A stretch of 64,000 nt of DNA from Macrostomum lignano. Taxonomy: Eukaryota. The translations under genes and the position numbers were made by a program. The stretch is taken from contig NIVC01002134.1 of NCBI GenBank assembly GCA_002269645.1, positions 34,513 to 98,512 on the forward strand. The letters are read 5' to 3'. The notes below the pieces were generated by a model. The model was not told the DNA's origin. It did not search any database and worked only from the letters and a program-made list of their open reading frames with translations. Below, piece by piece: positions 1-37,351 of this stretch; position 1 is the stretch's first letter; the number at the start of each line of letters is the position of its first letter.

Positions 1-395
1 AGATGCTCGCAGCACTCCGTCGGTTGGAACGGTAAATGCAGTAGAGCCATCGATGGAAACACGAACCAAAAACTATGGAAAGAAATCCTGCACCCACACC
101 CGCACTGCGACCGGCGCCTGGTGGCAGGCGAGGACAAGCAGACGTGCCAGAATCACATCCGTCAGAATCTACAACAGGCGGGACTGTTGCGCCAACAGAC
201 TCAGGAACTTTGTGATCAAGGTCGACGGTCGAGTGTGCGCGTCCTACCGCTCGTCGAGAGCGTTCTCTGTGAGGACGTTCAGGTGCAACGCAGTTGGTCG
301 CACAGTCCGCATCCAGACGAGGAATCGAGTACCGCTGACTCTGTGCGAAGTGCAAGTGTTTGGACGTTATGCTAAAGGCCGATCGCGAAGCAGAA
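1..395 (+). CDS. F-type lectin (FTP/fucolectin) domain exon 1 (5'-truncated)
   Basis: RAIDGN, CTHT, WWQ, NRRDCCANR, PLTLCEVQVFG motifs; donor gtaag at 396; extra A near 70 relative to copies 2 and 3. Confidence 0.9.
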
Positions 396-3300
396 GTAAG
401 AACAAAATAACCCTTTGCTCTTTGTATGACTTTAAAGTAGATTTCTATAGGCATTTCGTCGCCGAAATACAAGCTAAATATTTACCTCCTTTAAATCCTT
501 TTAGCTCCGGGAATGCGATTCGTCGGCTGCTACATCGACAAGAAAAAGCGAGACCTACCAGTGATGGCCGGCTCCGGCTCGATGAGCATCCCGAAGTGCT
601 ACCGACTGTGCAGAGCAAAGAGATACGCCTACTTCGGTGTGCAGTACAGCAAGGAGTGCTGGTGCGGAAACAGCTACGGCAAGTACGGAAAGAGATCCAA
701 GTCCGAGTGCAGGATGAAATGCTCGGGTAAAAAGTCCACCTTCTGCGGATCGAGCTGGAGAAACAGCATCTACACCACTGGACTGCCAGCTCGAAGACGA
801 CCAAGAGTATGTAAGTGATACAACGCTAACTGTCTAAAACTGAGTAGCAGATGTAATTCTTCGCTTAGTATCATTATTTGTCATACAGTTTAAACGCTAT
901 ATAGTGAGATGGAAATTAGTGACTTAAATTAACTTTGCGTGCTTTTATTACAAATAGAAAGGCACTGTGCACCGGCGTTAAAATTCCAAATAATATTTCC
1001 CCCGGAAGTACACTCGTGCTCAAATGTACACAATTTCAGCGAGACTGCCGCTGTCCAGATGCTCGCAGCATTCTATCGCTGCAAGAGGTAAATGCAGAAG
1101 AGCTATCGATGGAAACACGAACCAAAACTATGGAAAGAAATCCTGCACCCACACCCGCACTGCGACCGGCGCCTGGTGGCAGGCGAGGACAAGCAGACGT
1201 GCCAGAATCACATCCGTCAGAATCTACAACAGGCGGGACTGTTGCGCCAACAGACTCAGGAACTTTGTGATCAAGGTCGACGGTCGAGTGTGCGCGTCCT
1301 ACCGCTCGTCGAGAGCGTTCTCTGTGAGGACGTTCAGGTGCAACGCAGTTGGTCGCACAGTCCGCATCCAGACGAGGAATCGAGTACCGCTGACTCTGTG
1401 CGAAGTGCAAGTGTTTGGACGTTATGCTAAAGGCCGATCGCGAAGCAGAAGTAAGAACAAAATAACCCTTTGCTCTTTGTATGACTTTAAAGTAGATTCT
1501 ATAGGCATTTCGTCGCCGAAATACAAGCTAAATATTTACCTCCTTTAAATCCTTTTAGCTCCGGGAATGCGATTCGTCGGCTGCTACATCGACAAGAAAA
1601 AGCGAGACCTACCAGTGATGGCCGGCTCCGGCTCGATGAGCATCCCGAAGTGCTACCGACTGTGCAGAGCAAAGAGATACGCCTACTTCGGTGTGCAGTA
1701 CAGCAAGGAGTGCTGGTGCGGAAACAGCTACGGCAAGTACGGAAAGAGATCCAAGTCCGAGTGCAGGATGAAATGCTCGGTAAAAAGTCCACCTTCTGCG
1801 GATCGAGCTGGAGAAACAGCATCTACACCACTGGACTGCCAGCTCGAAGACGACCAAGAGTATGTAAGTGATACAACGCTAACTGTCTAAAACTGAGTAG
1901 CAGATGTAATTCTTCGCTTAGTATCATTATTTGTCATACAGTTTAAACGCTATATAGTGAGATGGAAATTAGTGACTTAAATTAACTTTGCGTGCTTTTA
2001 CTACCAATAGAAAGCCATTGTACAGCGGCGTTAAAAGCCGAGAATACACACGTGCTCAAATGTACACAATTTCAGCGAGGCTGCCTCTGTCCAGATGCTC
2101 GCAGCACTCCGTCGGTTGGAACGGTAAATGCAGTAGAGCCATCGATGGAAACACAAACCAAAACTATGGAAAGAAATCCTGCACCCACACCCGCACTGCG
2201 ACCGGCGCCTGGTGGCAGGCGAGGACAAGCAGACGTGCCAGAATCACATCCGTCAGAATCTACAACAGGCGGGACTGTTGCGCCAACAGACTCAGGAACT
2301 TTGTGATCAAGGTCGACGGTCGAGTGTGCGCGTCCTACCGCTCGTCGAGAGCGTTCTCTGTGAGGACGTTCAGGTGCAACGCAGTTGGTCGCACAGTCCG
2401 CATCCAGACGAGGAATCGAGTACCGCTGACTCTGTGCGAAGTACAAGTGTTCGGACGTTATGTAGGACGCACTCCAAAGCCGTCACGAGGTGAGTTTCTG
2501 TATTTTTAACTGGGAATGTGAGATTAATTTCGGCTTTACTTGCACCACTGTTAATCTGTATGTTTCGTTGAATTTTCTTTGTTCAGATTTTTGTTTAATT
2601 GATCACCGAAGAATTTCAAACAAAGCCAGTTTATGAAATTTAATTATAATTTTAGCTTGTCCAGCTGGGACGAAGGTGAAGCGAATCTCACGTCGTACCT
2701 GTTCTTGCAAGCCCGCGCCGGAAGAGCGACGGCTCGGCTCTCTCGTCTTCGTCATTGACATCACAGGCAGCATGGGCAGGGTGATTAACGCCGTTCGGAG
2801 GAACATCCGAAAGATTCTCGCTGCAAACAGGCGCTTCAGTAACTACGTTGTCGCTACTTTCGGCGACCCTTATGTGAAGAACATGAAGAAGACCAAAGAC
2901 GCTCGACAGGTGATTCGATTTCTCAATCGGCTTCGAGCATCCGGAGGTGGCGACTGTGCGGAGATGGCCATGTCTGGCGCACTGGACGCCGCAGCAGCTG
3001 CTGACCGCAACTCTGTCATGATGCTGTTCACCGACGCCTCGGCCAAGGACGCCCGACTGAAGGGTCGCGTATCGGCCAGGCTGAGGTCGAAAGGAATCAG
3101 GTTGTACACTGTCGCGAGCGGCAACCTTTGTCGGCGAGGCAGCGGACTTTACAAATCGTTGGCGAGAGGCTCAGGTGGCTACGTGGCGAGCCTGCGCTCC
3201 AGCTACTTCAACAAGGCACGGTTTATCATTTTCTTAAGCCTTTATGTTTTTAGCGACGCAATTGAATATTTTTCCTTGTCTGCCAAATGATTGAGAAAGT

Positions 3301-6300
3301 GATGAATTATTCCGAGATGTGAACTAAAGCTATCCCGTTAAATTTATTAGCTCTGAGCATTGGCTGCTTCGTGTAGTCGGACTTCTTGGGTGTGAAAAAA
3401 AGTTCGGCTGAATAATTTCATTTGCACGCCTTAAACAACAGGGCAACGATTTTACGTGATTTATTTTTAGGGACGATGAATTTTTTATGTCTTTTTCTTT
3501 ATGTTTGTAGTTGATGGAGTTCGTGAGGCGAGCAGCAAAGGGAAGAATGAGCTTCAGCGCTTTCCCAGCCAACGTAGCAGCACTAAACAGTGCACTTCGT
3601 GGGCGTAAGTATAATTTTTTGAAATTACCAATATACCAGCTAATAAAAAAATTTTCATATTGATAAATTCTGACACTTTTAGGTTGCCGTTGTCGCAACA
3701 TTAACCGCTCGATCTGTGTCCGAAAGAGTAAGAGCATCTCTATTATCAGTGTTTTGAAATACAATTTTTGTAAAACATGATTTACTTAAAAGCGCTTCGG
3801 TTAATCTCTCTTAGCTCCCGGATTGAGAAAAGTTGGCTGCTTTGTCGATGCGAAATCTAGAGATCTACCTGTTCTGGCTGGATCTGGCTCAATGAGTGTC
3901 TACAAATGCTACAAACTGTGCAGGGCGAAGAAGTATTCTTATTTTGGCGTACAGTTCTCCAAGCAGTGCTGGTGCGGCAATCGCTACGGTCGATACGGAT
4001 CCAGGCCGGCTCGCGAATGCAGAATGAGGTGCTCCGGCGACAAGTCCGCGTTCTGCGGCTCTAGCTGGAGAAACACAGTCTACACCACTGGAATTCCTTA
4101 TAGAGCTATTAAAAGTAATATTAATAAACTGATTTTTCAGGCTACTCTTTTTTGTGGATAGATAAAATTCTTGGAACGCATTTTGCTAATCATCTTTTAC
4201 TTTAAATCCTAACAGCCCCAGGTTTAAAATACATCGGTTGCTACATCGACCGAGCTAGTCGCGACCTGCCAGTGCTTGCTGGCCGAGGATCCATGAGCGT
4301 TGCTAAATGCTACAAACTCTGTCGAGCAAAGAAGTACCCGTATTTCGGCGTTCAGTACTCCAACCAGTGCTGGTGCGGCAACAGATATGGCCGGTACGGC
4401 GTGAGGGCTGCCAGAGAGTGCAAGATGCGCTGCAGCGGCGACTGGTCCAAGTTCTGCGGTTCCAGCTGGAGAAATAGGATCTATGCGACTGGACTTCGCG
4501 CTCCCGCTATTGCTAGTGAGTTTGTTGCTGGATTTTTTTAACAAATCCGGAAGAGAAATTACATTGAACAGTTCTCGTGCCTAATCGATGACTCATTAGC
4601 AAGCAGATTCATTAGCATTTGCTGTTTGACGAGTGTATACTCATAAAATATTAGGCAGACATCTTTTTGGTACGTTTATGATCTCGTAAAGCAATTATCT
4701 AGTAAAAGCTAGGCAAAATCAAATTTGACATCTAATCGAACAACAAAATGTTATAGCTCCCGGCTTAAGAAAGATTGGCTGCTTTGTTGATAACGCCATC
4801 CGCGATCTGCCTAAGTTGGTGGGCTCGGGCGTCATGACCGTGCCGAGGTGCTATCAGCTCTGCAAGCGGGCCAAGTACGCATATTTTGGCGTGCAGCACT
4901 CAAAGCAGTGCTGGTGCGGCAACAGCTACGGTCGCTACGGAGCGAAACCAATGTCGCAGTGCAAGCAGCGCTGTAGCGGCAATCGCAAAACTTTTTGCGG
5001 TGGAAATTGGCGAAACATTGTCTACTCTACGGGACTGAGGTCTTCGAGGCAATGTAATTCAAGTTGTAAAATATTCTGTCTTAATTTGATGTTTTTTCAC
5101 TGTGTTTATTTGCTTCAAAAATTTGAAAATCGATTTCAGTGCCGGGTATCAGGCATCTTGGCTGCTTTCTTGACAAAGGCAGCAGAGACTTGCGTAAATA
5201 TGCTGGATCTGGTCGCATGACAGTGTCAAAGTGTTACAAACTCTGTCGAGGCAAGAGCTACATGTACTTTGGTGTTCAAAATGGCAACCAATGCTTCTGC
5301 GGCAATAGTTACGGTCGATACGGTGTCAGACGCATCACTGAGTGCAGAAAGCGTTGCAGCGGCGACAAGTCGACTTATTGCGGAGCCTCTTGGAGAAACA
5401 GCGTCTACGCTACCGGTGTAACTCCTCCAAAAATCCTAAGTAGGTTTCTGCGATGCTATCTATAATGCCAACTAATTTGGATTCTGTGTCAACTTATACG
5501 AGTATATTTTCATTTTTGACTTTTTCCAGCACCAGGACTTCGATCTCTCGGATGCTACATCGATCGAAAGGCCCGAGATCTTCCAGTTTTGGCTGGCAGG
5601 GGCAGCTCGATGCGGATACCCGTCTGCTATAGGCTGTGCCGTGCCAAGAAATACTTGTACTTTGGAGTGCAACATTCTAACCAATGCTGGTGCGGCAACA
5701 CTTACGGACGGTACGGCGTTAGGCCAAAGAAAGAGTGCCGTATGCGGTGCCGAGGTGACGGATCGACGTATTGCGGCTCGTCCTGGAGGAACAGCGTCTA
5801 TGCCACTGGCCTAACAATGAACGATATTAGTAAGACTTTCTGCCAGTAATCTCTGTACTAATCGCATCCTATTTGCACTTATGCCATTTATTTTATGTTT
5901 TGCTGTTTAATTGCAGTGCCAGGGCTTCGCTACATCGGCTGCTTCCTTGACAGCGCCAACAGAGATCTGCCTAAGCTTGCCGGCAAAGGCAAGATGAGAA
6001 TTCAGAAGTGCTACCAGCTTTGCAGACAGAAGAACATGGCCTACTTCGGACTGCAGTACGGCAACCAGTGCTGGTGCGGCAATGAGTATGGGAAACACGG
6101 AGGTAGGAGGGCATCGGAGTGCAACAAGAGGTGCTCTGGAGACAGCAAACAGAAATGCGGCGCTTCTTGGAGAAACAGCGTCTACACTACTGGACTTGGA
6201 AATCAGGGAGAAAGTAAGATGATAACTCCTTTATACTAAATTACGCTTGTATTTTCATAGACTAAGTAAGTAAAAAATACTTAAAAATCCTTTCAGCCAA

Positions 6301-9300
6301 GCTGCCACTGTCTCACTGCTCGCAGCACTCCACAACATGGAAGGCCCCTTGCATTAGAGCCATTGACGGTAACACTAACCAGCACTTCTTCAAGCACTCC
6401 TGCACCCACACTAAAACTGCCAAAGGCGCCTGGTGGCAGGCTAAGACTAAAAAGCTCGCCAGAATCACCGAGATCACCATTCACAACAGACAGGACTGTT
6501 GTGCGAAGCGACTCAATAATTTCGTTGTGAAGGTAGACGGTCGCGAGTGCGCCTCGTACCGGTCGTCGGCAGCTTTCTCCGTGCGAACTTTCTCGTGCCA
6601 TCTGATTGGACGGGTCGTTCGAATTGAGACTAGAAATAAGGTGCCGCTAACTCTGTGCGAAGTGCAAGTCTTTGGACACTATGTCGTAGCGAGAGCCTGG
6701 CCTCCGGGTAAGCTCAAGAGAATATATATATATATCTCATACATATAACAAGCTATTTCCGAGAATTGAATGATTAGTCTATTAGTGTATTATCAAAACA
6801 GGAAAGATCTGAAAAATTATTTTATAAGCGTTTTATGCAGTACCATTTGGTGTAATGGATCTAATGGATCTAAACTTAGTCGAACATAGACCACCGATTA
6901 TAGCTCGTACTTAACATCTTTTCAGCTAAAGGAGTCAGGTATCTTGGTTGCTACGTTGACAACAAAAAGCGAGACCTGCCTTTACTATTGAACTCTCGTT
7001 CAAAGACTACCCGCAATTACTGTTACAAATCCTGCAAAGCACGTGGTTATCGCTATTTTGGTGTGCAGAACGGCAACCACTGCACGTGCGGCAACTCGTA
7101 CGGCCTGTTTGGTCGCGCTTCAGAGAAGAGCTGCCGATCGCTCTGTCAGGGCGAGAAGAGCACCTACTGCGGAGGTCCATGGAGAAACGCCGTCTACACA
7201 ACCGGAGTCAGCAGACCGCTTGCTTCAAGTAAGATTGATTTTTCTTAATAACTTAAGTCACAGCGCCACAAAAGAAAAGATATGTGGCTTGCCATTAAAT
7301 TCATGACAATAGCTAACGTCGTTAAAGTTATATTTCAATATGAGCCAGTGAAAATTGAATTCAAAAGCATTAAAAAAACCATATATTTCAGCTTTTTAAT
7401 TCATTTTGAGTCACCAAAATATCAAGCGCCTAAAATCATCATCAACTTCTCTTTCAGATAAGAGAGGGAATGATGATCTTATGCCAATCAAAGCTTCTAA
7501 ATTGAGAGATAGTTGGTAGGGTTTTTGAATGATAAAACGTCTTGGTCACGAAGCTTTTATATGTGGTTTTATTATAGATCAACTATCCGCAACTATTCTA
7601 CCAGCTCGTGTCAAGAAGTCTAGCTTAGAAGCTAGACTCATCGTCGCTAAATCCAATATTCTATCCCTGATCTCACCTCTATTTTCATAACACTTCATTT
7701 CAGCGCCGGGCATGACCAAGTTAGGATGTTTCATCGACAAGACTGCTCGCGACCTTCCAGTGCTGGGTGGCTCAGGCTCCATGAGCGCCGCCAAGTGCTA
7801 TAAGCTTTGCAGAGGCAAGAAAAAGCGATTCTTTGGCATTCAGAATGGCAACGAGTGCAGGTGCGGCAATCACTACGGTCGCTATGGTAGGCGTTCACAA
7901 ATCGAATGCAGAAAGCAGTGCACAGCAGACAAAACTGCCTACTGCGGTGCATCCTGGAGAAATATGATCTACACTACTGGACTGGATCTTGCTACTTCTA
8001 GTAAGGAGGAATATTTCTCATAAATGAATTACACATACGCATACTTTGACCGAAGAGAAAACGAGAATTACATCGCTCTCGCATTATCTATAATGCTTTA
8101 TTTAGGCGTTGGGGTCCGAAAACTCGGTTGCTTCGTCGACAGAGCTAAGCGAGACCTGCCTCATCTGTACGCTGCTGGACACAGAACTAACAAAGCCTTC
8201 TGCTGGAGATACTGCAAAAATAGGGGCTACAAGTACTTTGGTCTGCAGTTTGGCAATCACTGTACATGCGGAAACACGTACGGTCGGTACGGAAAGGCTA
8301 AATCGTCTACCTGCTCCTCCGTGTGCAAAGGCGATCGGAGAAGAAAGTGCGGCGGTGCTTGGAGAAACGAGATTTTCACAACCGGACTGAGGTCCAGACG
8401 ATACAAAAGTGAGATTCTCCAGCTTTACCTACTAAGATTTTAAACCAAAGTAAAAACAACATCGCGTACTATAAAAGTCGAACGCGCTAATCTAAATAAG
8501 TTAAAAAATTCACTTGCAGCACCTGGCATGCTCCATCTGGGTTGCTTTATTGACGCTAAGGCTCGCGATCTGCCCAAATTGGCTGGCAAGGGCCGCATGA
8601 CTGTCGGAAAGTGCTACAACTTGTGCAGAAAGCTCAAGTACAGATTCTTTGGAGTGCAGTACGCAAGTCAGTGCTGGTGCGGTAACCACTACGGACGGTA
8701 CGGTCTTCGCGACAAGAACGAGTGCCGCATGCAGTGCAGCGGCGACAAGACCACTTACTGCGGTGCAGGCTGGAGAAACGACATCTTCACAACTGGTCTT
8801 TCGGCCAGGCCAAAAGGTAAGATTACTTAGTGTTGCAATGCCTATAATTTATATCGATTACTGAAACGAGCTATCATTTACGAAAGCAACTATGATTTTT
8901 GTCCACAGACTCGGCTTATCTTGGCTGCTTCATTGACAACGCAGCCCGCGACCTGCCCAAGGTGGTGAACGCTGGAGTGAAAGCCAACAGCCACTACTGC
9001 ATCAAGCTGTGCAAGCGTGCTGGCTACAAGTACGCCGGTTTGCAATACGCCAGTTACTGCACCTGCGGCAATAGCTACGGCTCTCTGGGTCGAGTCAGCA
9101 ACAAGCAATGTAAAATGACGTGCAAGGGCGACAGGCGAGAGAAGTGCGGCGGACCGTGGAGGAACTCCGTCTACAGCACCGGACTCAAGACTAGAAAGGT
9201 GTCAAGTAAGTCTTCTTTTACACAAACTAACATAATGAACTTTTAGATTGTTAATTTTAAATGATCTTTGAGATAAATTTCAATTAATATCGTTGTTTTT

Positions 9301-12300: not shown

Positions 12301-15300
12301 CTGGCAAGGGCCGCATGACTGTCGGAAAGTGCTACAACTTGTGCAGAAAGCTCAAGTACAGATTCTTTGGAGTGCAGTACGCAAGTCAGTGCTGGTGCGG
12401 TAACCACTACGGACGGTACGGTCTTCGCGACAAGAACGAGTGCCGCATGCAGTGCAGCGGCGACAAGACCACTTACTGCGGTGCAGGCTGGAGAAACGAC
12501 ATCTTCACAACTGGTCTTTCGGCCAGGCCAAAAGGTAAGATTACTTAGTGTTGCAATGCCTATAATTTATATCGATTACTGAAACGAGCTATCATTTACG
12601 ACAGCAACTATGATTTTTGTCCACAGACTCGGCTTATCTTGGCTGCTTCATTGACAACGCAGCCCGCGACCTGCCCAAGGTGGTGAACGCTGGAGTGAAA
12701 GCCAACAGCCACTACTGCATCAAGCTGTGCAAGCGTGCTGGCTACAAGTACGCCGGTTTGCAATACGCCAGTTACTGCACCTGCGGCAATAGCTACGGCT
12801 CTCTGGGTCGAGTCAGCAACAAGCAATGTAAAATGACGTGCAAGGGCGACAGGCGAGAGAAGTGCGGCGGACCGTGGAGGAACTCCGTCTACAGCACCGG
12901 ACTCAAGACTAGAAAGGTGTCAAGTAAGTCTTCTTTTACACAAACTAACATAATGAACTTTTAGATTGTTAATTTTAAATGATCTTTGAGATAAATTTCA
13001 ATTAATATCGTTGTTTTTAACAGCTCCGGGACTGAAGTACCTCGGCTGCTTCGTCGACAAAGCCACCAGAGATCTGAGACGCGAAGCTCCAAAAGGCCAC
13101 ATGAGCGTGCCCAAGTGCTACAGGTTCTGTCGAAAGCACAAGTACAAGTTCTTCGGAGTGCAATATGGCAACCATTGCTTCTGCGGCAATCACTATGGCC
13201 GATTCGGAATCAGACCGAACACCGAGTGCAGAATGCAGTGCAGCGGCGATAAGACTACTTACTGCGGTGCAGGCTGGAGAAACAGTGTGTACGCTACCGG
13301 CTTGGAGCTGGCTTCCACAGGTAAATATTTAATAAAAAGTCTACCAACACTGAAATTTCAATTTTTACATAATATCAATAAAATATAAAACGGTTTTTAT
13401 TAAAGTGATGAGTGCTAGACATTTGAGCACGTGCTGACATCCATTGGATTCTGAATAATATTCAAAGCAACACCACCTTTCAGGAGCTGGAGTTCGCAAG
13501 CTCGGCTGCTACGTCGACACAGCTAAGCGAGACCTGCCCCACCTGTACGCTGCTGGACACAAGACTAACAAAGCCTTCTGCTGGAGGTACTGTAAAGGCA
13601 AGGGTTACAAGTACTTTGGACTGCAGTTCGGCAACCACTGTACATGCGGAAACACGTACGGTCGGTACGGTAGAGCAAAGGCGTCGTCATGCTCAGCAGT
13701 GTGCAAAGGCGACCGACGAAGAAAGTGCGGCGGCACTTGGAGAAACGAGATTTTTACAACCGGACTGAGGTCCAAGAATGCTAAAAGTGAGTTATTGTTA
13801 GCTTTCCTACGTTTTAGCATGAGCTGCTTAATGTAGGCTCAACTTTTATTTTAACGTTCTTGGGCGTCCTCTGACTGTAGCTCAGCTTTTAGAACACAGC
13901 ACTACTTTACAAAAGCCTGGGACAAAGAACATAGACAAATTAAACCCTCGCACTCCTCTTAGGTAAATTTACAGGTTCATATCGGTTTTCCATTCGATAC
14001 AGAAAAAGAACATAAGAGTGTTGAGTCTCAGTTCTCTCAATAAAAGAATATTGTTGTCAAAGTTAGTATCACTGCAGAGGCTTCATCCAACGGAATTTGC
14101 AGGTAAGCATTGGTGAAGTCGATGACGGCAAAAACGTTGCCCCGTCCAACTGGCTTAGGACGTCCTCGTTGCTTGGTGTGGTAGAGACCATGTCGTTTAA
14201 CCAATTATTTACTGTCACTTTATAATCCCCACGCAAACAAATCTTTCTATTCGGGTTTCTTACAGTCACGAATGGAGTAGACCATTTGCTCTGATCCACG
14301 GGCTTTAAGATCTTCTCCGCCACCAACCGTTCCAGTTCCAGCTTAACAGCATCACACATGCCGTAGCTGTCTGGTATTGGTCGTTGTTTAAAAAAACAAT
14401 GGTGTAGCACCATCCTTTAACGTGAGGTGCGCTCAAAATTAAGCAACTTAAAAGATGTTTAGATGAGGTTCCAGTGCGTGCATCCACTCGAGGCCATTAA
14501 AGATACTGGGAGCGTTTAGATTGTCTACCATGAATATCGGGAGGCTGCCGTCTTGCCTTGAAATTGCACGTTCACAATCGACTGTCCACATATCGGAACA
14601 ACTCTTCCTTGGTAATCGTTGAAATTTCTGTCCGGTATTAGACTTCCGGTTTTCTCTGTTAGACCATCGAACAGTTTTCTAGAAATTAGCGAGGCATCTG
14701 GATTTGCCACGGTATTGAAAACCGTGTTGAAATCGGTCCCGTTAATGCGCAACTTTCTGTAGATTCTCTGACTGTCCCCTTGAAATAAGAACACTTGATC
14801 TCCATTGTCCCCTAGCTGCTTATCGACATCGTTCCGAACTTCCCCATGCATAACATAAGTCTGATAGAAAATGACCCGCTTGTAGGCTTACATCTTTGCG
14901 AAGATGTCTTGGGGTTTAGTGCTTTACAGACGGCTTTGAGATGTCCCACTTTTCTACAATATCCACACTTGAGCAGCTTGTCTCGACATTCCCTCTTCAT
15001 GTGTACTTGCTTTCCACTGCAGAAGCAAGATATCTGTTTTCTTGCTTCTCAACGGTAGGCTCTTTCAGGCTGTTTTCATTGCCCAATTCCGGTGACGGGG
15101 TCGATTTCCCCCTGACTGGCGCATCTGTAATAGGCCTGAGTCCGCCATGTCCTCACCTCTTTACACAGATGCGCACGCTGTTGCAACAGCAGTGACCTTT
15201 TGCAGAGTTATTCCCGCGAGTTTCTCGGCCAATAGCTTGCGTAGAATATCTTATCTTTGTTCGAAAGTTCAAATATAAACTGGTCGCGAAGACGGTCCTT

Positions 15301-18300
15301 GACGTCGTTGGAATCGCACTCGTCGGCCAGTTGATTCAGTCTAGGACTGTTCGACAAGGTATCCTCGTTGGGCTCCTGCCCTGTCCTGCGAAATACGTAT
15401 CGGTAGGCGATTACAGATTTCAGTGATTTTATCTTGTCACTCAGCAAGGTCTTCATGTCATCGTAGGACTTCTTCTCAGTATCGTCTGGCACGGCTGCAT
15501 CTGCGAGAAGGTTACACATGCGCTTGCCAATAAGCGCTAGAAATGCGTCTTTCTGCTTTTCCTCCTTGAAGTCGTGAAATTTGCAGTGAATTTCGACTCT
15601 TCAAATCTACCTATTCGAATCTTCACCATCTTCTAGTGTGTCCAGTGGGGAAAGCCTCGTCGCCATTGTTAGCTTTCTTCTTACGTTGTAGCATGAGCTG
15701 CCAATGTATTCTCAATCTTTATTTTCACGCTCAGCTTATAAATCACAACACTAAATTACAAATACGCTCGTATCTAAGGCATATAGAAAAACTAAACCCT
15801 CGCAGTTGTTATTCAATACTTTATCATACATCGAACAAATTTAATGCTGCTTTGTTAAAAACTTGCAAAATGTGAAATTACACGGTGATGTACTTGTCAA
15901 ACTCTCGTAAAAAAACAAACAGATGATAGCTTTGAACTATATCGCTCTCTTTTAGCACCAGGAATGCTACATCTCGGCTGCTTCGTCGACTCTAAAGCTC
16001 GCGACCTACCCAAATTAGCTGGCAAGGGCCGCATGACTGTCGGAAAGTGCTACAACTTGTGCAGAAAGCTCAAGTACAGATTCTTTGGAGTGCAGTACGC
16101 AAGTCAGTGCTGGTGCGGTAACCACTACGGACGGTACGGTCTTCGCGACAAGAACGAGTGCCGCATGCAGTGCAGCGGCGACAAGACCACTTACTGCGGT
16201 GCAGGCTGGAGAAACGACATCTTCACAACTGGTCTTTCGGCCAGGCCAAAAGGTAAGATTACTTAGTGTTGCAATGCCTATAATTTATATCGATTACTGA
16301 AACGAGCTATCATTTACGACAGCAACTATGATTTTTGTCCACAGACTCGGCTTATCTTGGCTGCTTCATTGACAACGCAGCCCGCGACCTGCCCAAGGTG
16401 GTGAACGCTGGAGTGAAAGCCAACAGCCACTACTGCATCAAGCTGTGCAAGCGTGCTGGCTACAAGTACGCCGGTTTGCAATACGCCAGTTACTGCACCT
16501 GCGGCAATAGCTACGGCTCTCTGGGTCGAGTCAGCAACAAGCAATGTAAAATGACGTGCAAGGGCGACAGGCGAGAGAAGTGCGGCGGACCGTGGAGGAA
16601 CTCCGTCTACAGCACCGGACTCAAGACTAGAAAGGTGTCAAGTAAGTCTTCTTTTACACAAACTAACATAATGAACTTTTAGATTGTTAATTTTAAATGA
16701 TCTTTGAGATAAATTTCAATTAATATCGTTGTTTTTAACAGCTCCGGGACTGAAGTACCTCGGCTGCTTCGTCGACAAAGCCACCAGAGATCTGAGACGC
16801 GAAGCTCCAAAAGGCCACATGAGCGTGCCCAAGTGCTACAGGTTCTGTCGAAAGCACAAGTACAAGTTCTTCGGAGTGCAATATGGCAACCATTGCTTCT
16901 GCGGCAATCACTATGGCCGATTCGGAATCAGACCGAACACCGAGTGCAGAATGCAGTGCAGCGGCGATAAGACTACTTACTGCGGTGCAGGCTGGAGAAA
17001 CAGTGTGTACGCTACCGGCTTGGAGCTGGCTACCACTGGTAAATATTTTTAGACGATAAAAGTATTAATATTGACTTTTCGATTTGTATATATTACCTTC
17101 AAACATGAAAAGAGCCAGCCGTCTTTTTAAGTAGTGAGTGCCTAAAAATTGAGCACTAGCTTGCAATCAAAAATATATTTGAGAAATGCAGAAATGCTAC
17201 GTGCTGACATCCATTGGATTCTGAATAATATTCAAAGCAACACCACCTTTCAGGAGCTGGAGTTCGCAAGCTCGGCTGCTACGTCGACAAAGCTAAACGA
17301 GACTTGCCCCACCTGTACGCTGCTGGACACAAGACTAACAAAGCCTTCTGCTGGAGGTACTGTAAAGGCAAGGGTTACAAGTACTTTGGACTGCAGTTCG
17401 GCAACCACTGTACATGCGGAAACACGTACGGTCGATACGGTAAAGCAAAGGCGTCGTCATGCTCAGCAGTGTGCAAAGGCGACCGACGAAGAAAGTGCGG
17501 CGGCACTTGGAGAAACGAGATTTTCACAACCGGACTGAGGTCCAAGAAGGCTAAAAGTGAGTTATTATTTAATACTTTATCATGCATCGAAAAAAATTAT
17601 TGCTGCTTTGTTAAAAACTTGCAAAATGTGAAATTACACGGTGATGTACTTGTCAAACTCTCGTAAAAAAACAAACAGATGAAAGCTTTGAACTATATCG
17701 CTCTCTTTTAGCACCAGGAATGCTACATCTCGGCTGCTTCGTCGACTCTAAAGCTCGCGACCTACCCAAATTGGCTGGCAAGGGCCGCATGACTGTCGGA
17801 AAGTGCTACAACTTGTGCAGAAAGCTCAAGTACAGATTCTTTGGAGTGCAGTACGCAAGTCAGTGCTGGTGCGGTAACCACTACGGACGGTACGGTCTTC
17901 GCGACAAGAACGAGTGCCGCATGCAGTGCAGCGGCGACAAGACCACTTACTGCGGTGCAGGCTGGAGAAACGACATCTTCACAACTGGTCTTTCGGCCAG
18001 GCCAAAAGGTAAGATTACTTAGTGTTGCAATGCCTATAATTTATATCGATTACTGAAACGAGCTATCATTTACGACAGCAACTATGATTTTTGTCCACAG
18101 ACTCGGCTTATCTTGGCTGCTTCATTGACAACGCAGCCCGCGACCTGCCCAAGGTGGTGAACGCTGGAGTGAAAGCCAACAGCCACTACTGCATCAAGCT
18201 GTGCAAGCGTGCTGGCTACAAGTACGCCGGTTTGCAATACGCCAGTTACTGCACCTGCGGCAATAGCTACGGCTCTCTGGGTCGAGTCAGCAACAAGCAA

Positions 18301-21300
18301 TGTAAAATGACGTGCAAGGGCGACAGGCGAGAGAAGTGCGGCGGACCGTGGAGGAACTCCGTCTACAGCACCGGACTCAAGACTAGAAAGGTGTCAAGTA
18401 AGTCTTCTTTTACACAAACTAACATAATGAACTTTTAGATTGTTAATTTTAAATGATCTTTGAGATAAATTTCAATTAATATCGTTGTTTTTAACAGCTC
18501 CGGGACTGAAGTACCTCGGCTGCTTCGTCGACAAAGCCACCAGAGATCTGAGACGCGAAGCTCCAAAAGGCCACATGAGCGTGCCCAAGTGCTACAGGTT
18601 CTGTCGAAAGCACAAGTACAAGTTCTTCGGAGTGCAATATGGCAACCATTGCTTCTGCGGCAATCACTATGGCCGATTCGGAATCAGACCGAACACCGAG
18701 TGCAGAATGCAGTGCAGCGGCGATAAGACTACTTACTGCGGTGCAGGCTGGAGAAACAGTGTGTACGCTACCGGCTTGGAGCTGGCTACCACTGGTAAAT
18801 ATTTTTAGACGATAAAAGTATTAATATTGACTTTTCGATTTGTATATATTACCTTCAAACATGAAAAGAGCCAGCCGTCTTTTTAAGTAGTGAGTGCCTA
18901 AAAATTGAGCACTAGCTTGCAATCAAAAATATATTTGAGAAATGCAGAAATGCTACGTGCTGACATCCATTGGATTCTGAATAATATTCAAAGCAACACC
19001 ACCTTTCAGGAGCTGGAGTTCGCAAGCTCGGCTGCTACGTCGACAAAGCTAAACGAGACTTGCCCCACCTGTACGCTGCTGGACACAAGACTAACAAAGC
19101 CTTCTGCTGGAGGTACTGTAAAGGCAAGGGTTACAAGTACTTTGGACTGCAGTTCGGCAACCACTGTACATGCGGAAACACGTACGGTCGATACGGTAAA
19201 GCAAAGGCGTCGTCATGCTCAGCAGTGTGCAAAGGCGACCGACGAAGAAAGTGCGGCGGCACTTGGAGAAACGAGATTTTCACAACCGGACTGAGGTCCA
19301 AGAAGGCTAAAAGTGAGTTATTATTTAATACTTTATCATGCATCGAAAAAATTATTGCTGCTTTGTTAAAAACTTGCAAAATGTGAAATTACACGGTGAT
19401 GTACTTGTCAAACTCTCGTAAAAAAACAAACAGATGAAAGCTTTGAACTATATCGCTCTCTTTTAGCACCAGGAATGCTACATCTCGGCTGCTTCGTCGA
19501 CTCTAAAGCTCGCGACCTACCCAAATTGGCTGGCAAGGGCCGCATGACTGTCGGAAAGTGCTACAACTTGTGCAGAAAGCTCAAGTACAGATTCTTTGGA
19601 GTGCAGTACGCAAGTCAGTGCTGGTGCGGTAACCACTACGGACGGTACGGTCTTCGCGACAAGAACGAGTGCCGCATGCAGTGCAGCGGCGACAAGACCA
19701 CTTACTGCGGTGCAGGCTGGAGAAACGACATCTTCACAACTGGTCTTTCGGCCAGGCCAAAAGGTAAGATTACTTAGTGTTGCAATGCCTATAATTTATA
19801 TCGATTACTGAAACGAGCTATCATTTACGACAGCAACTATGATTTTTGTCCACAGACTCGGCTTATCTTGGCTGCTTCATTGACAACGCAGCCCGCGACC
19901 TGCCCAAGGTGGTGAACGCTGGAGTGAAAGCCAACAGCCACTACTGCATCAAGCTGTGCAAGCGTGCTGGCTACAAGTACGCCGGTTTGCAATACGCCAG
20001 TTACTGCACCTGCGGCAATAGCTACGGCTCTCTGGGTCGAGTCAGCAACAAGCAATGTAAAATGACGTGCAAGGGCGACAGGCGAGAGAAGTGCGGCGGA
20101 CCGTGGAGGAACTCCGTCTACAGCACCGGACTCAAGACCAGAAAAGCTTCGAGTAAGTGATTGAGTAAAAGAAAGCTCGAAAAACACTTTTTTCACGATA
20201 TATTGGTACTATATAATTTTCATTTCATTTTTTTTGACAATGTTTAGCGCCGGGAATGAAATACCTCGGCTGCTTTGTCGATAGTTCGAAACGAGATCTA
20301 AGACGCGAAGCTCCAAGAGGCCACATGAGCGTGCCCAAGTGCTACAGGCTCTGTCGAAAGCACAAGTACAAGTTTTTCGGAGTGCAATATTCCAACCATT
20401 GCTTCTGCGGCAATCACTATGGCCGATTCGGAATCAGACCGAACACCGAGTGCAGAATGCAGTGCAGCGGCGACAAGACCACTTACTGCGGAGGAGGCTG
20501 GAGAAACAATGTTTACACGACAGGCTTGGAGGTGGCTACAATTGGTAAATGTGCATTTTTATTGAGTTTTTTAAGCCTCTGGACATCGCATATAAAATGA
20601 GATTAAACACAGAAAATTATCTTCAACGCATTCATTTTTTATAGCCAAGGGTGTCAGACGTCTTGGATGTTTTGTTGACAATGCCAAGCGAGACCTGCCT
20701 TTAGTACACAATGCCGGTCATAAGGCAAGCAAGCCATACTGCTGGAAATTCTGCAAGAGCCGAGGCTACGTTTACTTTGGTCTGCAGAATGGAAATCATT
20801 GCACGTGCGGCAATAACTACGGAGCTTTCGGTCGAGCCAAGAAGAGCTCGTGTCGCAAACCCTGTCGGGGAGACAAGAGGTCGAAATGCGGTGGAGCCTA
20901 CAGAAACGAAGTGTTCACAACCGGAATTGAGCTTGAGCGGCCATCGGGTGAGATTACTACAGATCGGGTGGTTTAATACAAACGATCGTTGGTTAAAATT
21001 CAATTTTTTCGGAACCTTTCACCCACTCCAGCTCCGGGCATGAAGCACATGGGCTGCTTTGTCGATTCTCGCAAACGCGACCTGCCTAAGCTTGCTGCCA
21101 CTGGCGACATGTCTGTCCTGAAGTGCCGCTTAAAGTGCAAACGACTCGGCTATAGGTACTTTGGTGTACAATTTGCCAAGCAGTGCTGGTGCGGCAACAG
21201 CTACGGTAAGCACGGCAAGAGAAGCCAGATCGAGTGCAGGATGCAGTGCACCGGCGACAAGGCCAACTACTGCGGAAATAGCTGGAGAAACGACATCTAC

Positions 21301-23924
21301 TCTACGGGGATTGAGCTGGAAGCGTCCAGTGAGTATTCTTTCCACTGCCCATTTTTCGAAAGTTTTTCCGTGTCGTCTTTAAAGTAATTCTTTCAGCTTG
21401 CAAGTCCTGTAATACAGTAAAGCAACGTTTAGAATGCATTTTTGATAAATAAAAGATTCATGCAGGGGCATCGCCACCGGGGGGGACAAGGGGGGCATGC
21501 CCCCCAGTAAAAGATAAGGGGGGGGGGGTCATGCCAATGCTTTGTCCCCCCAACCTTGTATGGAAATCAATAATTTTGCTGCAGGGTGAGAAAGCACGGT
21601 GCCAAAATAAGTGCCTGCGGCGCCAAAATAAGTGCCTACGGCGCTAAAATGAGTGCCTGCGGCGCTAAAATGAGTGCCTGCGGCGCTAAAATGAGTGCCT
21701 GCGGCGCTAAAATTAGTGCCTGCGGCGCCAAAATTAGTGCCTACGGCGCTAAAATGAGTGCCTGCGGCGCTAAAATGAGTGCCTGCGGCGCTAAAATTAG
21801 TGCCTGCGGCGCCAAAATTAGTGCCTGCGGCGCTAAAATGAGTCTCTGCGGTACCAAAATGAGTGCCTGCGGCGCTAAAATGAGTGCCTGCGGCGCTAAA
21901 AAGGAGCGCCGGCAACACCGACTCAGAAAATAATGTACACGTAGGAATTTAGTCATGTAGGTCGTACATGTAGATGTATCAATAAAATTCTTGGCTTTGT
22001 CTCCCCCCCCACCATAAAATCCATGGCGACGCCATTGGATTCAATTATCCGTCTGTCTAATATACGTTTGTATGAATGGAAGTGAGGAGAGATACATACG
22101 ATATAACATTTATTGTACAGTGTATATACTTGTAACACACTTACGAGCAGCTCTTATAGAATTTGAAGCATAACCGGTTAGCATTGTAGGGAATTAGGGA
22201 ACTTATGGAATTTTATAGTTTGGAATAAAGATAGATAAACGAGAATAGTTAAGTAGCGTCGATAGTTTATGCATCAAATCTGGCATCCTATCCGTTCTCA
22301 GCTTGCCGGCTCGGCACCAAGGAGAAGTTCGTGCCCTACCGCACCTGCTCTTGCAAGCCGGCGCCAGACCATCGCAGCCTCGGCTCCCTGGTGTTCGTCA
22401 TTGACACTACGGGCAGCATGGGCAGAGTCATCAAGTCCGTGAAGAACAACATCCGCAAAATCATCGCTGCCAATAAGCGATTCGACGACTTCGTCGTTGC
22501 CACATTCGGCGATCCCTACAAGAAGAAGCTGATGAAGACAACCAGCGCATCGAAGATCTATCGGTTCCTCAACAAGCTGAAGGCCAGAGGAGGTGGCGAC
22601 TGTCCCGAGTTCGCGATGTCGGGCGCTCTGGACGCTGCCGAGGCTGCCGAGCCGAACTCCGTCATGATTCTGTTCACGGACGCCTCAGCCAAGGACAGGC
22701 GCAAGATGGGCGCCGTGGAGGCCAAGCTGAAGGCCAAGAGAATCCGATTCTTCACGGTAGCCAGCGGCAGGCAGTGCGGCACGAACGGAAAGAACTTCGC
22801 TAAGTTGGCCAAAGTCACCTACGGACAGTTTTCTAGGCTTCACTCCAAAGTCAGCAATAAGGTAAAATTGATTTTCTATGAGCTTGTAGAGAGACCGCAG
22901 GGTTGATTTCAGATTATGTAGTCAAATAATTACTTAATGAAACTCTCCGCCCAGGTCATGGAGCTCATCAGACGAGGTGTCCGAGGCGATTTAAGCTTCA
23001 GTGCCTTCCCCTCAAGCCGTGGCGGTCTGACCAGAGTGCTGAAAGGAAGTGAGTACTCTTTTGACTTATCAATATACCAGGTAGCAGACATTTTTAACGA
23101 CTTGAAAAATTTCTCAAGCGGTGTTTATCGAAATGGGTAATCGAAGTTTGACTCACAAGAGACAGTCACATGTACCTTACCTACTTCGGAAGCCAGCCTT
23201 TTCAAGGAGCTAAAGTCAAGATGATAAAGTATCATTGAGTAAGATTATAGATACTGAAGCGCTAAATAAAACATCAATTTTGGCTGCAAACAACTTAAAA
23301 TTTTCAGAATGCCCTTGTCGAACTGTTACTCGTCGAATTTGTGTGAAGCCGCATCCAGGTAAGATTGTTTTTTGTTTGTTTAATTTAGATAGCTTAACGA
23401 TAAAATTTAATTTTTTATACGAGATAATCATTGCTTCATGTGACTTGACGTAAATGGACATCGCTGGCAAATGGCTAGTTTTTAAAGTACACTGACAAAT
23501 ATGGAAGTCGTACGGCGGCTGAACGATTGTTTAATGCACGCTCATTTAAGTACCCATTTGCCAGCAATATAGAAGGACGTTGTTACCGCACAGCTACTAC
23601 TATAAGTAGTTGTATCAAACTTTTACATACATCGCCCATTCGATCATTAAAGGATTCCTCGGCTGTTACCTGGACGACCCGGAGTATCCGGACTTCACCG
23701 TCGCCATGGTGTCCAACCGCATGACTGTGTGGAAGTGCAATAAAATCTGCAAGGCCAAGAAGTTTTCCTACTTCGGCGTCAAGAACGGCAAAATCTGCGG
23801 CTGCGGCAATCAGTATGGAAACAGCGGCGACACCGCCAATGCCAACTGCAACGTGGCTTGCGGCGGCAACCCGGGCGAGAAGTGCGGCGGGAACTCCAAC
23901 AATAGCGTCTTCGAGGTGAAGTGA
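1..23924 (+). CDS. Giant multi-exon cationic lectin-like extracellular protein (4 F-type lectin + 33 WSC + 2 vWA domains), 5' end outside window
   Basis: Successive exons are bounded by AG/GT sites and join in one frame from position 1 to TGA at 23922-23924. Two single-base homopolymer slips (~70 and ~1779) and one GC donor (3216) must be allowed. Domain order: FTP-WSC-FTP-WSC-FTP-vWA-WSCx6-FTP-WSCx24-vWA-WSC(stop). Confidence 0.8.
505..810 (+). CDS. WSC domain exon
   Basis: GCYxD...CxxxC...YFGVQ...CWCGN...C...C...CG.SWRN.IY pattern; ttttag acceptor, gtaagt donor. Confidence 0.92.
1040..1450 (+). CDS. F-type lectin domain exon 2
   Basis: Same motifs as copy 1; tttcag acceptor, gtaag donor. 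Confidence 0.9.
1559..1863 (+). CDS. WSC domain exon (copy of 505-810, 1-nt deletion ctcggg>ctcgg near 1779)
   Basis: Near-identical to 505-810 at offset ~1054; the ORF track shows the frame switch. Confidence 0.85.
2076..2489 (+). CDS. F-type lectin domain exon 3
   Basis: Same motifs; donor gtgagt at 2490. Confidence 0.9.
2656..3727 (+). CDS. vWA cassette 1, hemicentin/VWA7-type (exons 2656-3215, 3511-3604, 3683-3727)
   Basis: LVFVIDITGSM, VATFGDP, GGGDCAEMAMSGAL, LFTDASAKD match hemicentin-type vWA motifs; first two exons have the same lengths (560, 94 nt) as in cassette 2. Confidence 0.85.
3815..6213 (+). CDS. Six diverged WSC exons (3815-4114, 4216-4515, 4757-5053, 5140-5439, 5530-5829, 5917-6213)
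   Basis: Each has the WSC Cys pattern with CWCGN/CFCGN and WRN; phase-1 AG/GT boundaries. Confidence 0.9.
6297..6707 (+). CDS. F-type lectin domain exon 4 (diverged)
   Basis: RAIDGNTNQ, CTHT, WWQ, NRQDCCAKR, PLTLCEVQVFG; tttcag / gtaagc. Confidence 0.9.
6926..21328 (+). CDS. Array of 24 WSC exons
   Basis: Exon starts 6926, 7704, 8106, 8520, 8909, 9306, 9766, 12238, 12627, 13024, 13484, 15956, 16345, 16742, 17254, 17712, 18101, 18498, 19010, 19467, 19856, 20248, 20645, 21032; each 297-303 nt, phase 1. Confidence 0.9.
10078..12086 (-). mobile_element. Internally deleted Ty3/Gypsy LTR retrotransposon, copy 1
   Basis: Diverged TG..CA direct repeats at 10078-10234 and 11949-12086. TSD gttat/gttgt. 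PBS-like TGGCGACGAG next to the 5' LTR and short purine tract next to the 3' LTR. Frameshifted gag, CCHC knuckle (CGYCRKVGHLKAVC), degenerate protease and RT N-terminus (SKWSTPFV..CLRGDYK). No RNase H or integrase seen. Confidence 0.88.
13796..15804 (-). mobile_element. Internally deleted Ty3/Gypsy LTR retrotransposon, copy 2
   Basis: Apparently identical to 10078-12086 at +3718; duplicated with the host unit. Confidence 0.88.
21463..22037. mobile_element. hAT-like non-autonomous element carrying a 21-bp minisatellite (~21597-21900)
   Basis: Imperfect TIRs caggggcatcgcca / tggcgacgccattg; flanks gattcatg / gattcaat (6/8 match, 8-bp TSD-like). Confidence 0.65.
22302..23358 (+). CDS. vWA cassette 2, hemicentin/VWA7-type (exons 22302-22861, 22955-23048, 23308-23358)
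   Basis: LVFVIDTTGSM, VATFGDP, GGGDCPEFAMSGAL, LFTDASAKD; canonical GT-AG. Confidence 0.88.
23653..23924 (+). CDS. Terminal WSC exon with stop codon
   Basis: GFLGCYLDD...CNKICK...YFGVKNGKICGCGN...CGG...SVFEVK*. Confidence 0.88.
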
Positions 23925-24026: not shown

Positions 24027-24032
24027 AATAAA
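24027..24032 (+). terminator. Candidate polyadenylation signal AATAAA
   Basis: First AATAAA about 100 nt after the stop at 23924. Confidence 0.5.
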
Positions 24033-31800: not shown

Positions 31801-31980
31801 ACGAAGCAGCCAAGATAAGCCGAGCCTGTGGACAAAAATCATAGTTGCTGTCGTAAATTACAGCTTATTTCAATAATCGATCTCTGTAAGGCTAGTCAGT
31901 GCTAGCGGTGGCCGCTTACCTTGAGACGACAGCACATGCAGAAGGCACGCAACCAGCAATAACCAGCCTTTGCATGCCAT
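28849..31980 (-). CDS. Secreted 6xWSC protein (~608 aa), inverted paralog of the giant gene
   Basis: Exons 31980-31920 (signal peptide MACKGWLLLVACLLHVLSSQG), 31825-31529, 31432-31136, 31042-30746, 30289-29993, 29690-29385, 29120-28849. All GT-AG and phase 1; total 1827 nt, in frame to TGA. Confidence 0.88.
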
Positions 31981-32334: not shown

Positions 32335-32642
<308 letters not shown>

Positions 32643-33878: not shown

Positions 33879-34503
33879 AGAGAGAGAGAAGAGAGAGGGA
33901 GAGAGAGAAAAGAAGAGATAAAAGAGAAGACAGATGAGGGAAGATACGAGAGATACGGCAGCATATCTGCAACCGTTACATGTACAGGTAAGACAAAATA
34001 TCTGATGATTTAGCTTGGCGGTGTACAGTGAGGTAATGAGCTCAGGGTGTGAGACTGGGATAAGCTTAGACCATTTGGCACTTCGGCAGAGTTGGAGAAG
34101 CTTCACTTCTTTCTGCTGCGATAAAACTTGAAAAGGCGCAGTAGTTTTATGGGAGGAATTTCTCTTCTGAAAATCTCTTGAGTGCATTGCCCGTTGACAG
34201 GCGTCGGCCCTTTTCAAACCATTATTTTCGCACTTTTTATCGGAATTTTTGACACAATTGCACCTCTCAGGTAGAGTGATGGCAATTAGTCCAACAGGTG
34301 TGCTATGGCCTGCTACAGGCTACTATATTAAAAATAGAGATTCCCATCTAACATTCGATTTTTTTAGAAATGAAGGCGCATCGATAAAACACTCAGCTGT
34401 CTTAACACGGAGTCCGCCGGCTATCCCAGAAAGTGTGTTCTAAAGTGTGTCCTCACGGATATGTGTTCTATATTTCGGGAAATATTACAAATATTGAGAC
34501 CAA

Positions 34504-36696: not shown

Positions 36697-37093
36697 AACT
36701 GATGAGGCACAGAGTCTGTCTAATACGATAATTTCTATAACACAAAAGTCAGGTAACCTAAAACGTCAAAATAAGCTTATGGTATCATATTTTCATCTAT
36801 TTTCATGGAACTATCTGATCAGCCGGTGAGTTAGCCAGTCAACGGAGTCACAGGGTAAAAATTGGACAAAAACAATGCAGACATTCTTATATCCTTGTAG
36901 ACATTGATAATAATGAAATTTACGGCCAGATTTGATTTGTCCTTGTTCATTCATTTTACAGAATTTTGATTTTGTTCGAATTGCAATAACATCAACAAAC
37001 TTTTGCTACTGACTATGAATTAATTTCTTGACTGCACTCTAGCTAGTATGCTCGTAAAACTTAGTAAAACTTGCACTTCTATACGAGCACCTA

Positions 37094-37351
37094 TATATAC
37101 TGATTAAGTACTACAGAGTACCTTTTCTTCTTTTACTTTAACTCTAACAATACACAAGTCCATACAAACTACGTGTGTCTATTTATGGCTGTCCTAACGA
37201 TGATAATAAACTAGTTAAATATAAAATCGATACTTTTTTAGTAAGAAATTACCTGCGCAAACTCTGAAGTCAAGACAGTGCTACCAAATGCAAGGCAAAG
37301 ATGCCCCCAATTCCTAAAGTTCATAACAGCACTTAGCTATCTTAATTCAAC
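37094..37351. repeat. 258-bp direct repeat, copy 1
   Basis: Apparently identical to 39063-39320 (offset 1969). Confidence 0.9.

Follow-up and report, generated by a model that had tools for sequence, protein, structure and literature searches.

A candidate giant polycationic gene of Macrostomum lignano with F-type lectin, WSC and VWA_4 exons in tandem

Can dozens of small lectin-type exons be joined into one protein, and what would such a protein do? The question is raised by a 64,000-nucleotide stretch of the genome of the flatworm Macrostomum lignano (assembly GCA_002269645.1, contig NIVC01002134.1, positions 34,513 to 98,512 of the forward strand), called here the window. Its plus strand carries, in 1..23924, a long series of exons encoding F-type lectin (FTP), WSC and VWA domains. 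The initial annotation, made from the letters of the sequence, had described a giant polycationic multi-lectin scaffold, a candidate glue, mucus or defence protein. In this work we present a computational analysis of this locus. The earlier observation is confirmed, its structural interpretation is supported, and its functional interpretation is plausible as far as sequence can tell. Most probably, the region represents the last 24 kb, at the 3′ end, of a single protein-coding gene of very large size.

On the plus strand of 1..23924 a model of 43 exons was obtained, with AG acceptors and GT donors and a single exception, a GC donor at 3215|GC. All domain exons are of phase 1-1 and encode one domain each, and the spliced exons amount to 12,873 nt. 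Without any correction the frame stays open for 3,927 consecutive codons in 38 exons, from WSC02 to the stop codon at 23922-23924, with all splice phases kept. After two 1-bp corrections the whole model becomes a single open reading frame (ORF) of 4,290 aa, which agrees with the previous estimate of more than 4,000 aa of joined, tandem Cys-rich domains (Cys makes up 7.2% of the product). The domains follow in the order FTP-WSC-FTP-WSC-FTP / VWA_4 / six WSC / FTP / three WSC / five times the WSC cassette A-B-C-D / WSC / VWA_4 / terminal WSC. Each VWA exon is trailed by two small exons, the first encoding a 31-aa extension and the second a Cys-rich basic linker of 15-17 aa, and their boundaries agree with those of paralogous proteins (P0010, P0017 and P0079 in our numbering, in which P denotes proteins and L loci or contigs). 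As the same terminal module closes the smaller relatives P0002, P0008 and P0079, we take position 23924 as the true gene end.

The number and identity of the domains were established by several searches. Using domain queries derived from the window, tblastn recovered exactly 33 WSC, four FTP-like and two VWA exons, the same counts as had been claimed (WSC02 is listed twice owing to its frameshift), and a motif scan of the same strand gave 33 WSC-type open segments. In Pfam, three representative WSC exons matched PF01822 with E-values of 2e-20 to 2e-17 and 64-73 bits against a cut-off of 27.8, while representative FTP exons matched F5_F8_type_C_2 (PF22633, E 4e-13 to ~5e-13) and F5_F8_type_C (PF00754, E 1.5e-7), both above the cut-offs. 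The VWA exons matched VWA_4 (PF25106) with E-values of 1.4e-35 and 2.5e-35 at profile positions 1-166 and 1-157 of 169, a profile of the hemicentin/VWA7 type, so the hemicentin type named earlier for them was correct. Eight Cys residues are present in every WSC exon (33/33) and every FTP exon (4/4). The nearest solved structures to WSC01 are Kremen1 (E 2e-9) and the fungal WSC domain 7PZ2. A sequence search of the PDB with VWA1 found no relative; the MIDAS-like motif of both VWA domains reads D-I/T-T-G-S, with Thr replacing the first Ser of the canonical D-x-S-x-S.

The FTP domains retain the features of a fucose-binding site. Their best PDB match is striped bass FBP32 (3CQO, E 3e-27), followed by the Streptococcus pneumoniae fucolectin-related protein and eel AAA. 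The fucose-binding motif H-X26-R-X-D-X4-R (searched as H.{26}R.D.{4}[RK]) is found in all four domains, and the alignment to FBP32 runs ungapped across it, with H, R-x-D, Cys-Cys and R all aligned, so that the spacing equals that of FBP32. Presumably it also matches that of eel AAA (His52/Arg79). The AIDGN calcium motif, of the h2-D-G-x type, aligns with AIDGN of FBP32, and the His/Arg/Arg triad, the adjacent Cys-Cys and AIDGN are conserved in all four domains. The F-type lectin review from which the motif definitions were taken writes the His-Arg spacer as X24 (PMC5712786).

The calculated properties of the 4,290-aa product are unusual in charge. It contains 838 K+R against 216 D+E, that is +14.5 per 100 aa, a net charge of about +620 and a calculated isoelectric point (pI) of about 10.0. 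The count of about 24 K+R against 4 D+E, reported before for the first WSC exon, is exact, and the basic character ascribed to the lectin and VWA domains was found as well, with pI of about 11.7 for FTP1-3 (10-11.8 over the FTP domains) and 10.3-11.3 for the VWA domains. Every module is basic and the terminal WSC alone is near neutral. The domains form a bead-on-a-string array, and the linkers between them have just 10-13 residues. As stated in the initial annotation, no transmembrane segment precedes the stop: the highest 19-residue Kyte-Doolittle mean in the model is 1.37 and the C-terminus (NSVFEVK followed by the stop) is not hydrophobic. N-glycosylation sequons (N-x-S/T) are strongly depleted, with 2 observed against 26 ± 5 expected from composition shuffles, and 2 against 20 ± 4 in the non-redundant part.

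Comparison of paralogous exons, both within the array and against a convergent copy at 28.8-31.8 kb, gave ratios of nonsynonymous to synonymous divergence (dN/dS) of 0.04-0.39, which indicates that the exons evolved as coding sequence. For A1 and A2 dN is 0.009 and dS 0.20, while dN/dS is 0.17 for FTP3 and FTP4 and 0.22 for VWA1 and VWA2. The long, Cys-rich, polycationic array of lectin-like domains proposed for this locus, extracellular in type and with the fucose motif intact in all four FTP domains, stands.

The gene was, in our estimation, rather probably built through repeated tandem duplication of single-domain phase 1-1 exons. WSC12-WSC31 represent a cassette of four WSC exons (A-B-C-D) repeated five times, of which copies 1-4 have about 98-100% DNA identity to one another and copy 5 about 91-93% to the others. 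The first two cassette units, 3,718 bp each, are 99.6% identical over 4,813 bp with no gaps, and the later units recur every ~1,756 bp. Two introns (10069-12237 and 13787-15955) contain a retroelement fragment with gag-, protease- and reverse transcriptase-like ORFs on the minus strand, located at 10351-11801 in the first; these ORFs gave no Pfam match, and their PDB match to the Moloney murine leukaemia virus reverse transcriptase is weak (E ~0.05). Since both long cassette units carry the same retroelement intron, their duplication is later than the insertion.

Protein searches gave matches of 90-99% identity to M. lignano proteins only, and we consider it likely, on balance, that the gene is a member of a family confined to this lineage, whose proteins are assembled from F-lectin, WSC and VWA_4 modules, with one subfamily, including this gene, being strongly polycationic. 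The polycationic trait is common to P0001, P0016 and P0079 (+14 to +20 per 100 aa) and is not seen in the remaining WSC or VWA_4 proteins of M. lignano (P0080, P0083), which are neutral. Module order varies among the relatives. At locus L005 (NIVC01001234.1, Mlig_3_7, 1-17348) six VWA, twelve WSC, one VWA and a terminal WSC follow each other on one strand; its six tandem VWA_4 exons have a period of about 1,584 bp, the public model (821 aa) spans the last 7 kb alone, and its product P0079 is, over its full length, 56% identical to the last 525 aa of the plus-strand gene. A small paralogue (L001) has the order WSC-FTP-FTP-WSC. Complete small relatives start with signal peptides, namely P0008 (three FTP and a terminal WSC), P0016 and P0080. 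The database models P0001, P0003 and P0006 hold more alternating WSC-FTP units than positions 1-2500 of the window, with frameshifted stretches elsewhere, and therefore more FTP-WSC units are probably located upstream of the window, their number varying between assemblies or copies.

Another member of the family lies in the window itself, tail-to-tail with the plus-strand gene (Table 1). Its terminal WSC has 91% protein identity to the WSC at 23653-23924, and the one other high-identity match of the protein searches, P0253 (UniProt A0A1I8J1C5), belongs to this minus-strand paralogue as a partial model. Several DNA matches between the two convergent genes end at exon boundaries; for instance, 29393-29692 and 503-802 are 98.7% identical over exactly 300 nt, with the flanking introns unaligned, which suggests exon-limited gene conversion or strong constraint. 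Like L005, L001 and the signal peptides of the small relatives, these matches speak for a real coding gene. As a separate observation, three Logan contigs (L002-L004, from SRR31628425, SRR31628392 and SRR31628393) show the cationic WSC order D-A-B in one frame of about 350 aa, with 51% protein identity to the cassette; they may represent a spliced transcript of a related species, or genomic sequence, and were not used as evidence. The convergent paralogue is absent from the initial annotation, as are the frameshifts, the near-identical cassettes, the retroelement in two introns and the prostate WSC lead given below.

What would a protein of this kind do? The reading we prefer, and find somewhat better than even, is a lineage-specific, secreted, polycationic and multivalent glycan binder. 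It would be exported into an extracellular secretion as a rigid string of 39 small disulfide-rich modules, and could bind many glycan chains at once, fucosylated glycans via the F-lectin sites and other glycans via the WSC domains, while polyanionic surfaces would be bound through the net charge. The outcome would be cross-linking, agglutination or gelling of glycoconjugates and polyanionic surfaces, and the few N-glycan sites of its own would lower self-binding.

More specific proposals on where such a binder would act are held with less confidence. The best of them, still only a tentative one, is a reproductive secretion, either a seminal-fluid (prostate) or a female-tract or egg-coat protein whose targets would be glycans of sperm, of eggs or of the antrum of the partner, with rapid exon amplification driven by sexual selection, a parallel to the F-lectin repeats in the sperm bindin of oysters. 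The prostate-limited seminal-fluid candidates of M. lignano prominently include WSC proteins: among 76 prostate-limited transcripts, BLAST most often assigned the names 'fungistatic metabolite' and 'transmembrane receptor' (6 each), and WSC-domain proteins are also in the table (PMC5977470). Those fungal names stand beside WSC-domain proteins in the BLAST list of transcript RNA815_80.4, which is Mlig-pro5, a prostate-specific transcript with two WSC domains (PMC4490696), and Mlig-pro46, which resembles WSCD2, affects sperm competitiveness (PMC6953679). F-type lectins have a role in fertilisation of other animals (PMC5712786), and the very recent tandem duplication and paralogue turnover seen at the locus would fit as well. 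On the other hand, 36 primers of 18 of the 76 prostate transcripts gave no match in the window at up to 4 mismatches, apart from one chance match with 4 mismatches, the words 'fucolectin', 'lectin' and 'hemicentin' are absent from the BLAST table of the prostate-limited set, and the transcripts of the prostate candidates are short, at about 1 kb.

A little less probable is an agglutinin of humoral or mucosal defence, delivered by epidermal, rhabdite, pharyngeal or gut glands and clumping microbes in mucus through fucose, glucan or anionic envelopes. The ligands of fungal WSC lectins are beta-glucan or chitin; an extremely multivalent, positively charged molecule is well suited to agglutination, and the depletion of sequons would keep it from binding itself. 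Innate immune recognition is the role for which F-type lectins are best known (PMC5712786), and the binding motif is intact in this gene. Nothing in the analysis, however, separates defence from a reproductive role.

Several points weigh against an intact, secreted glycan binder. Position 1 falls inside an FTP exon, and so the 5′ end, the N-terminus and any signal peptide are beyond the window edge; the gene is modelled from genomic DNA. Apart from the N-terminal FTP-WSC units, no protein with at least 90% identity to VWA1, the cassette or the C-terminus was found among 5.8 billion proteins. F5/8-type-C-like folds are able to bind ligands besides fucose, and, to our knowledge, the glycan ligands of animal WSC domains are poorly established. 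Two 1-bp indels in homopolymers shift the reading frame: there is one A too many at ~68 in FTP1, and a G is missing at ~1778 in WSC02. With cassette copies 1-4 near-identical, the count of 33 WSC is assembly-dependent or polymorphic, and part of the cassette array could be an assembly artefact or polymorphic. Finally, the VWA1 donor, which we read as that of a GC-AG intron, could be a defect.

The last of these points lead to the next alternative, that the locus is decaying or inflated by assembly, with real frameshifts, a GC donor as a splice defect and mis-assembled cassettes. The duplicated retroelement is included in the high identity of cassette copies 1-4, database models of the family are also frameshifted (P0001, P0006 and P0109), and most of the gene is without a high-identity annotated protein. 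We nevertheless regard this alternative as unlikely. FTP-WSC units 1 and 2 differ over ~900 bp by no substitutions and by three 1-bp homopolymer indels, one of them intronic, and indels without substitutions in a near-identical repeat fit consensus error much better than real divergence; both frameshifts thus look like assembly errors. The length of the uncorrected frame, the low dN/dS and the invariant eight Cys of the WSC exons also speak against decay, and symmetric phase 1-1 exons can be skipped with no loss of frame. As to the donor, the GC of VWA1 occupies exactly the site of the GT in VWA2, and the boundary in the paralogues falls there too. Other GT donors for VWA1 were inspected by eye and rejected in favour of the GC donor, as they break the frame or add a hydrophobic 10-mer absent from the paralogues.

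Of the functional options offered, glue ranks last, and a part in the temporary adhesive or in egg cement, with polycationic lectin domains gluing glycosylated partners or substrates, is very improbable: although Mlig-ap1 works by positive charge on negatively charged sugars, as could a product of ~+620, and the adhesives of sea stars and sea urchins repeatedly contain Cys-rich lectin, discoidin and vW-type domains, the adhesive system is already characterised, with Mlig-ap1 and Mlig-ap2 found in footprints by mass spectrometry and RNA interference (RNAi) of each leading to non-adhesive animals (PMC6410801), while in the literature searched no flatworm-adhesion paper mentions WSC, and the two papers found for M. 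lignano with WSC both concern reproduction.

Coordinates of the features of the plus-strand gene and of its convergent paralogue are collected in Table 1.

Table 1. Exons and other features of the plus-strand gene and its convergent paralogue, in window coordinates
Feature	Position	Strand	Remarks
Exon FTP1 (F-type lectin)	1..395	+	5′ cut by window edge; extra A at ~68 in a homopolymer shifts the frame
Exon WSC01	505..810	+	K+R 24, D+E 4, 8 Cys
Exon FTP2	1040..1450	+	
Exon WSC02	1559..1863	+	G missing at ~1778 (GGG to GG) shifts the frame
Exon FTP3	2076..2489	+	motif H-X26-R-X-D-X4-R intact; ungapped alignment to FBP32 (3CQO)
Exon VWA1 (VWA_4, hemicentin type)	2665..3215	+	ends at non-canonical GC donor AAG|GCACGG
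31-aa extension after VWA1	3511..3604	+	LMEFVRRAAKGRMSFSAFP...; boundary kept in paralogues P0010, P0017
15-aa basic Cys linker	3683..3727	+	RCRCRNINRSICVRK
WSC03-WSC08, six exons	3815..6213	+	3815-4114, 4216-4515, 4757-5053, 5140-5439, 5530-5829, 5917-6213
Exon FTP4	6297..6707	+	72% aa identity to FTP3; motif intact
WSC09-WSC11, three exons	6926..8408	+	6926-7228, 7704-8000, 8106-8408
Cassette copy 1 (WSC A-B-C-D)	8520..10068	+	8520-8816, 8909-9205, 9306-9602, 9766-10068
Intron with retroelement fragment	10069..12237	+	2.2 kb
Cassette copy 2	12238..13786	+	12238-12534, 12627-12923, 13024-13320, 13484-13786
Retroelement-bearing intron, second copy	13787..15955	+	
Cassette copy 3	15956..17556	+	15956-16252, 16345-16641, 16742-17038, 17254-17556
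Cassette copy 4	17712..19312	+	17712-18008, 18101-18397, 18498-18794, 19010-19312
Cassette copy 5	19467..20947	+	more diverged; 19467-19763, 19856-20152, 20248-20544, 20645-20947
Exon WSC32	21032..21328	+	
Intronic minisatellite	21597..21901		21 bp x 14.5; same repeat at paralogous locus L001
Exon VWA2 (VWA_4)	22302..22861	+	E 2.5e-35
31-aa extension after VWA2	22955..23048	+	
17-aa Cys linker	23308..23358	+	KCPCRTVTRRICVKPHP; kept in paralogue P0079
Terminal exon WSC33	23653..23924	+	divergent, weakly basic; ends ...NSVFEVK and stop TGA 23922-23924
AATAAA, candidate poly(A) signal	24027..24032	+	103 nt past the stop; read from sequence
Convergent tail-to-tail paralogue	28852..31838	-	six cationic WSC exons (B, C, B, C, WSC01-like, terminal WSC); 88-99% DNA identity to plus-strand exons

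The rest of the window contains other genes and many repeats. Exons of a septin gene lie directly downstream of the mega-gene at 24605-26260 on the plus strand (Pfam Septin, E 2.5e-13, second ORF), and exons of the Nup96 nucleoporin domain at 57325-58903 on the minus strand (PF12110, E 5.6e-35). A 264-aa ORF at 33170-34217 (minus strand), with a GIY-YIG-like stretch recognised by eye and no Pfam match, adjoins a (GA)n tract at 32343-32641 and is possibly a Penelope-like element. Several copies of a glycine-rich ORF (GGCGAGWLG...GGGGGSFC...GGNSDS) occur on both strands at 34700-51300, one of them matching the ALK/LTK glycine-rich domain (PF12810, E 8.5e-10), and may form a family multiplied locally. 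Repeats are very abundant in the right half of the window; long minisatellites are located at 37956-38907, 52640-54658, 55217-57288, 60343-61706 and 62508-63084 (e.g. 40 bp in 50 copies of 95% identity).

How new is the architecture? We looked for WSC arrays with a single exon as the query, and when the 150 top-scoring proteins out of 1.84 billion representatives were compared, no other protein had more than 23 WSC stretches, the largest other arrays having 23 (an acidic protein, pI 4.4), 16 and 13. A literature search found no paper combining 'F-type lectin' and 'WSC', and a search by the Mlig_3_7 gene IDs of the paralogues returned nothing. These results bear out the impression, recorded in the initial annotation, that the domain combination is unfamiliar at such a scale. 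The gene is a new architectural variant made of known domains, a member of a lineage-specific family for which public gene models are fragmentary. A bolder view, which we find doubtful, would make this the largest array of WSC domains observed so far and the first mosaic of F-lectin, WSC and VWA_4 to be described, the flagship of Macrostomum-specific polycationic folded-domain glycan cross-linkers that grow by exon-cassette amplification, and a new structural secretion matrix (an ejaculate or sperm-anchoring, egg-coat or mucus scaffold) which acts by lectin and electrostatic binding. If this were true, extracellular cohesion based on charge would have arisen by two independent routes, that of Mlig-ap1 and that of such a matrix scaffold.

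If expressed as modelled, the gene shows the reach of exon-per-domain amplification in making a multivalent lectin, one in which 39 folded modules, predicted to bind carbohydrate or protein, go together with a very high positive charge and a near absence of N-glycan sites. The gene would be a candidate for research on seminal-fluid proteins and sexual conflict in M. lignano, where WSC proteins are prominent yet unexplained, as well as for research on charge-based bioadhesion and cohesion in this species.

Compared with known systems, the gene combines common parts in an uncommon way. With the F-type lectins (eel AAA 1K12, striped bass FBP32 3CQO, oyster sperm bindin) its FTP domains have in common the triad, Cys-Cys and AIDGN, and tandem and mosaic arrangements are typical of that family (PMC5712786); here, however, few of the domains are FTP, and these stand between WSC and VWA_4 domains and are extremely basic, with fucose binding predicted. 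The eight-Cys pattern of WSC proteins (Kremen1/2, polycystin-1, WSCD1/2, fungal Wsc sensors, WSC lectins) is common to all 33 exons, but the known animal proteins are receptors or enzymes with a single WSC domain or two, whereas this gene has 33 in tandem with no transmembrane segment and no catalytic domain. With hemicentin and VWA7 it shares the extracellular-type VWA_4, without the Ig, EGF and fibulin modules of hemicentin.

Within the same species, the prostate-limited candidates (Mlig-pro5/RNA815_80.4, Mlig-pro46 and others) also carry WSC in secreted proteins, theirs being short and divergent with two or so WSC domains. Identity with RNA815_80.4 was rejected, as its WSC is very divergent and without the RDLP-type cationic sequence, which makes it a distant WSC relative. 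Like Mlig-ap1 and Mlig-ap2, the predicted product is very large, secreted, repeat-built and Cys-rich, and Mlig-ap1 is also polycationic and binds anionic sugars (PMC6410801). The charge here is on folded lectin-type domains, in contrast to the low-complexity KR repeats of the adhesion proteins, and identity with them was rejected on domain content, which there includes C-type lectin, vWD/C8/TIL, EGF, LDLR, TSP-1 and KR repeats and in the 43 exons here FTP, WSC, VWA_4 and short linkers.

A further likeness is to the FTP/WSC/VWA_4 family of M. lignano itself (A0A1I8J1D5, BOX15_Mlig031442g2, BOX15_Mlig000253g1, BOX15_Mlig025149g1), which has the same modules, the basic character in a subfamily, the terminal WSC ending in ...VFEV(D)K and the tail of VWA_4, 31 aa, Cys linker and terminal WSC. 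Current models fragment this family badly, which matters for proteomic or RNAi screens: its annotated members are uncharacterised pieces of 240-1,155 aa, whereas the present locus encodes at least 4,290 aa with all three domain types.

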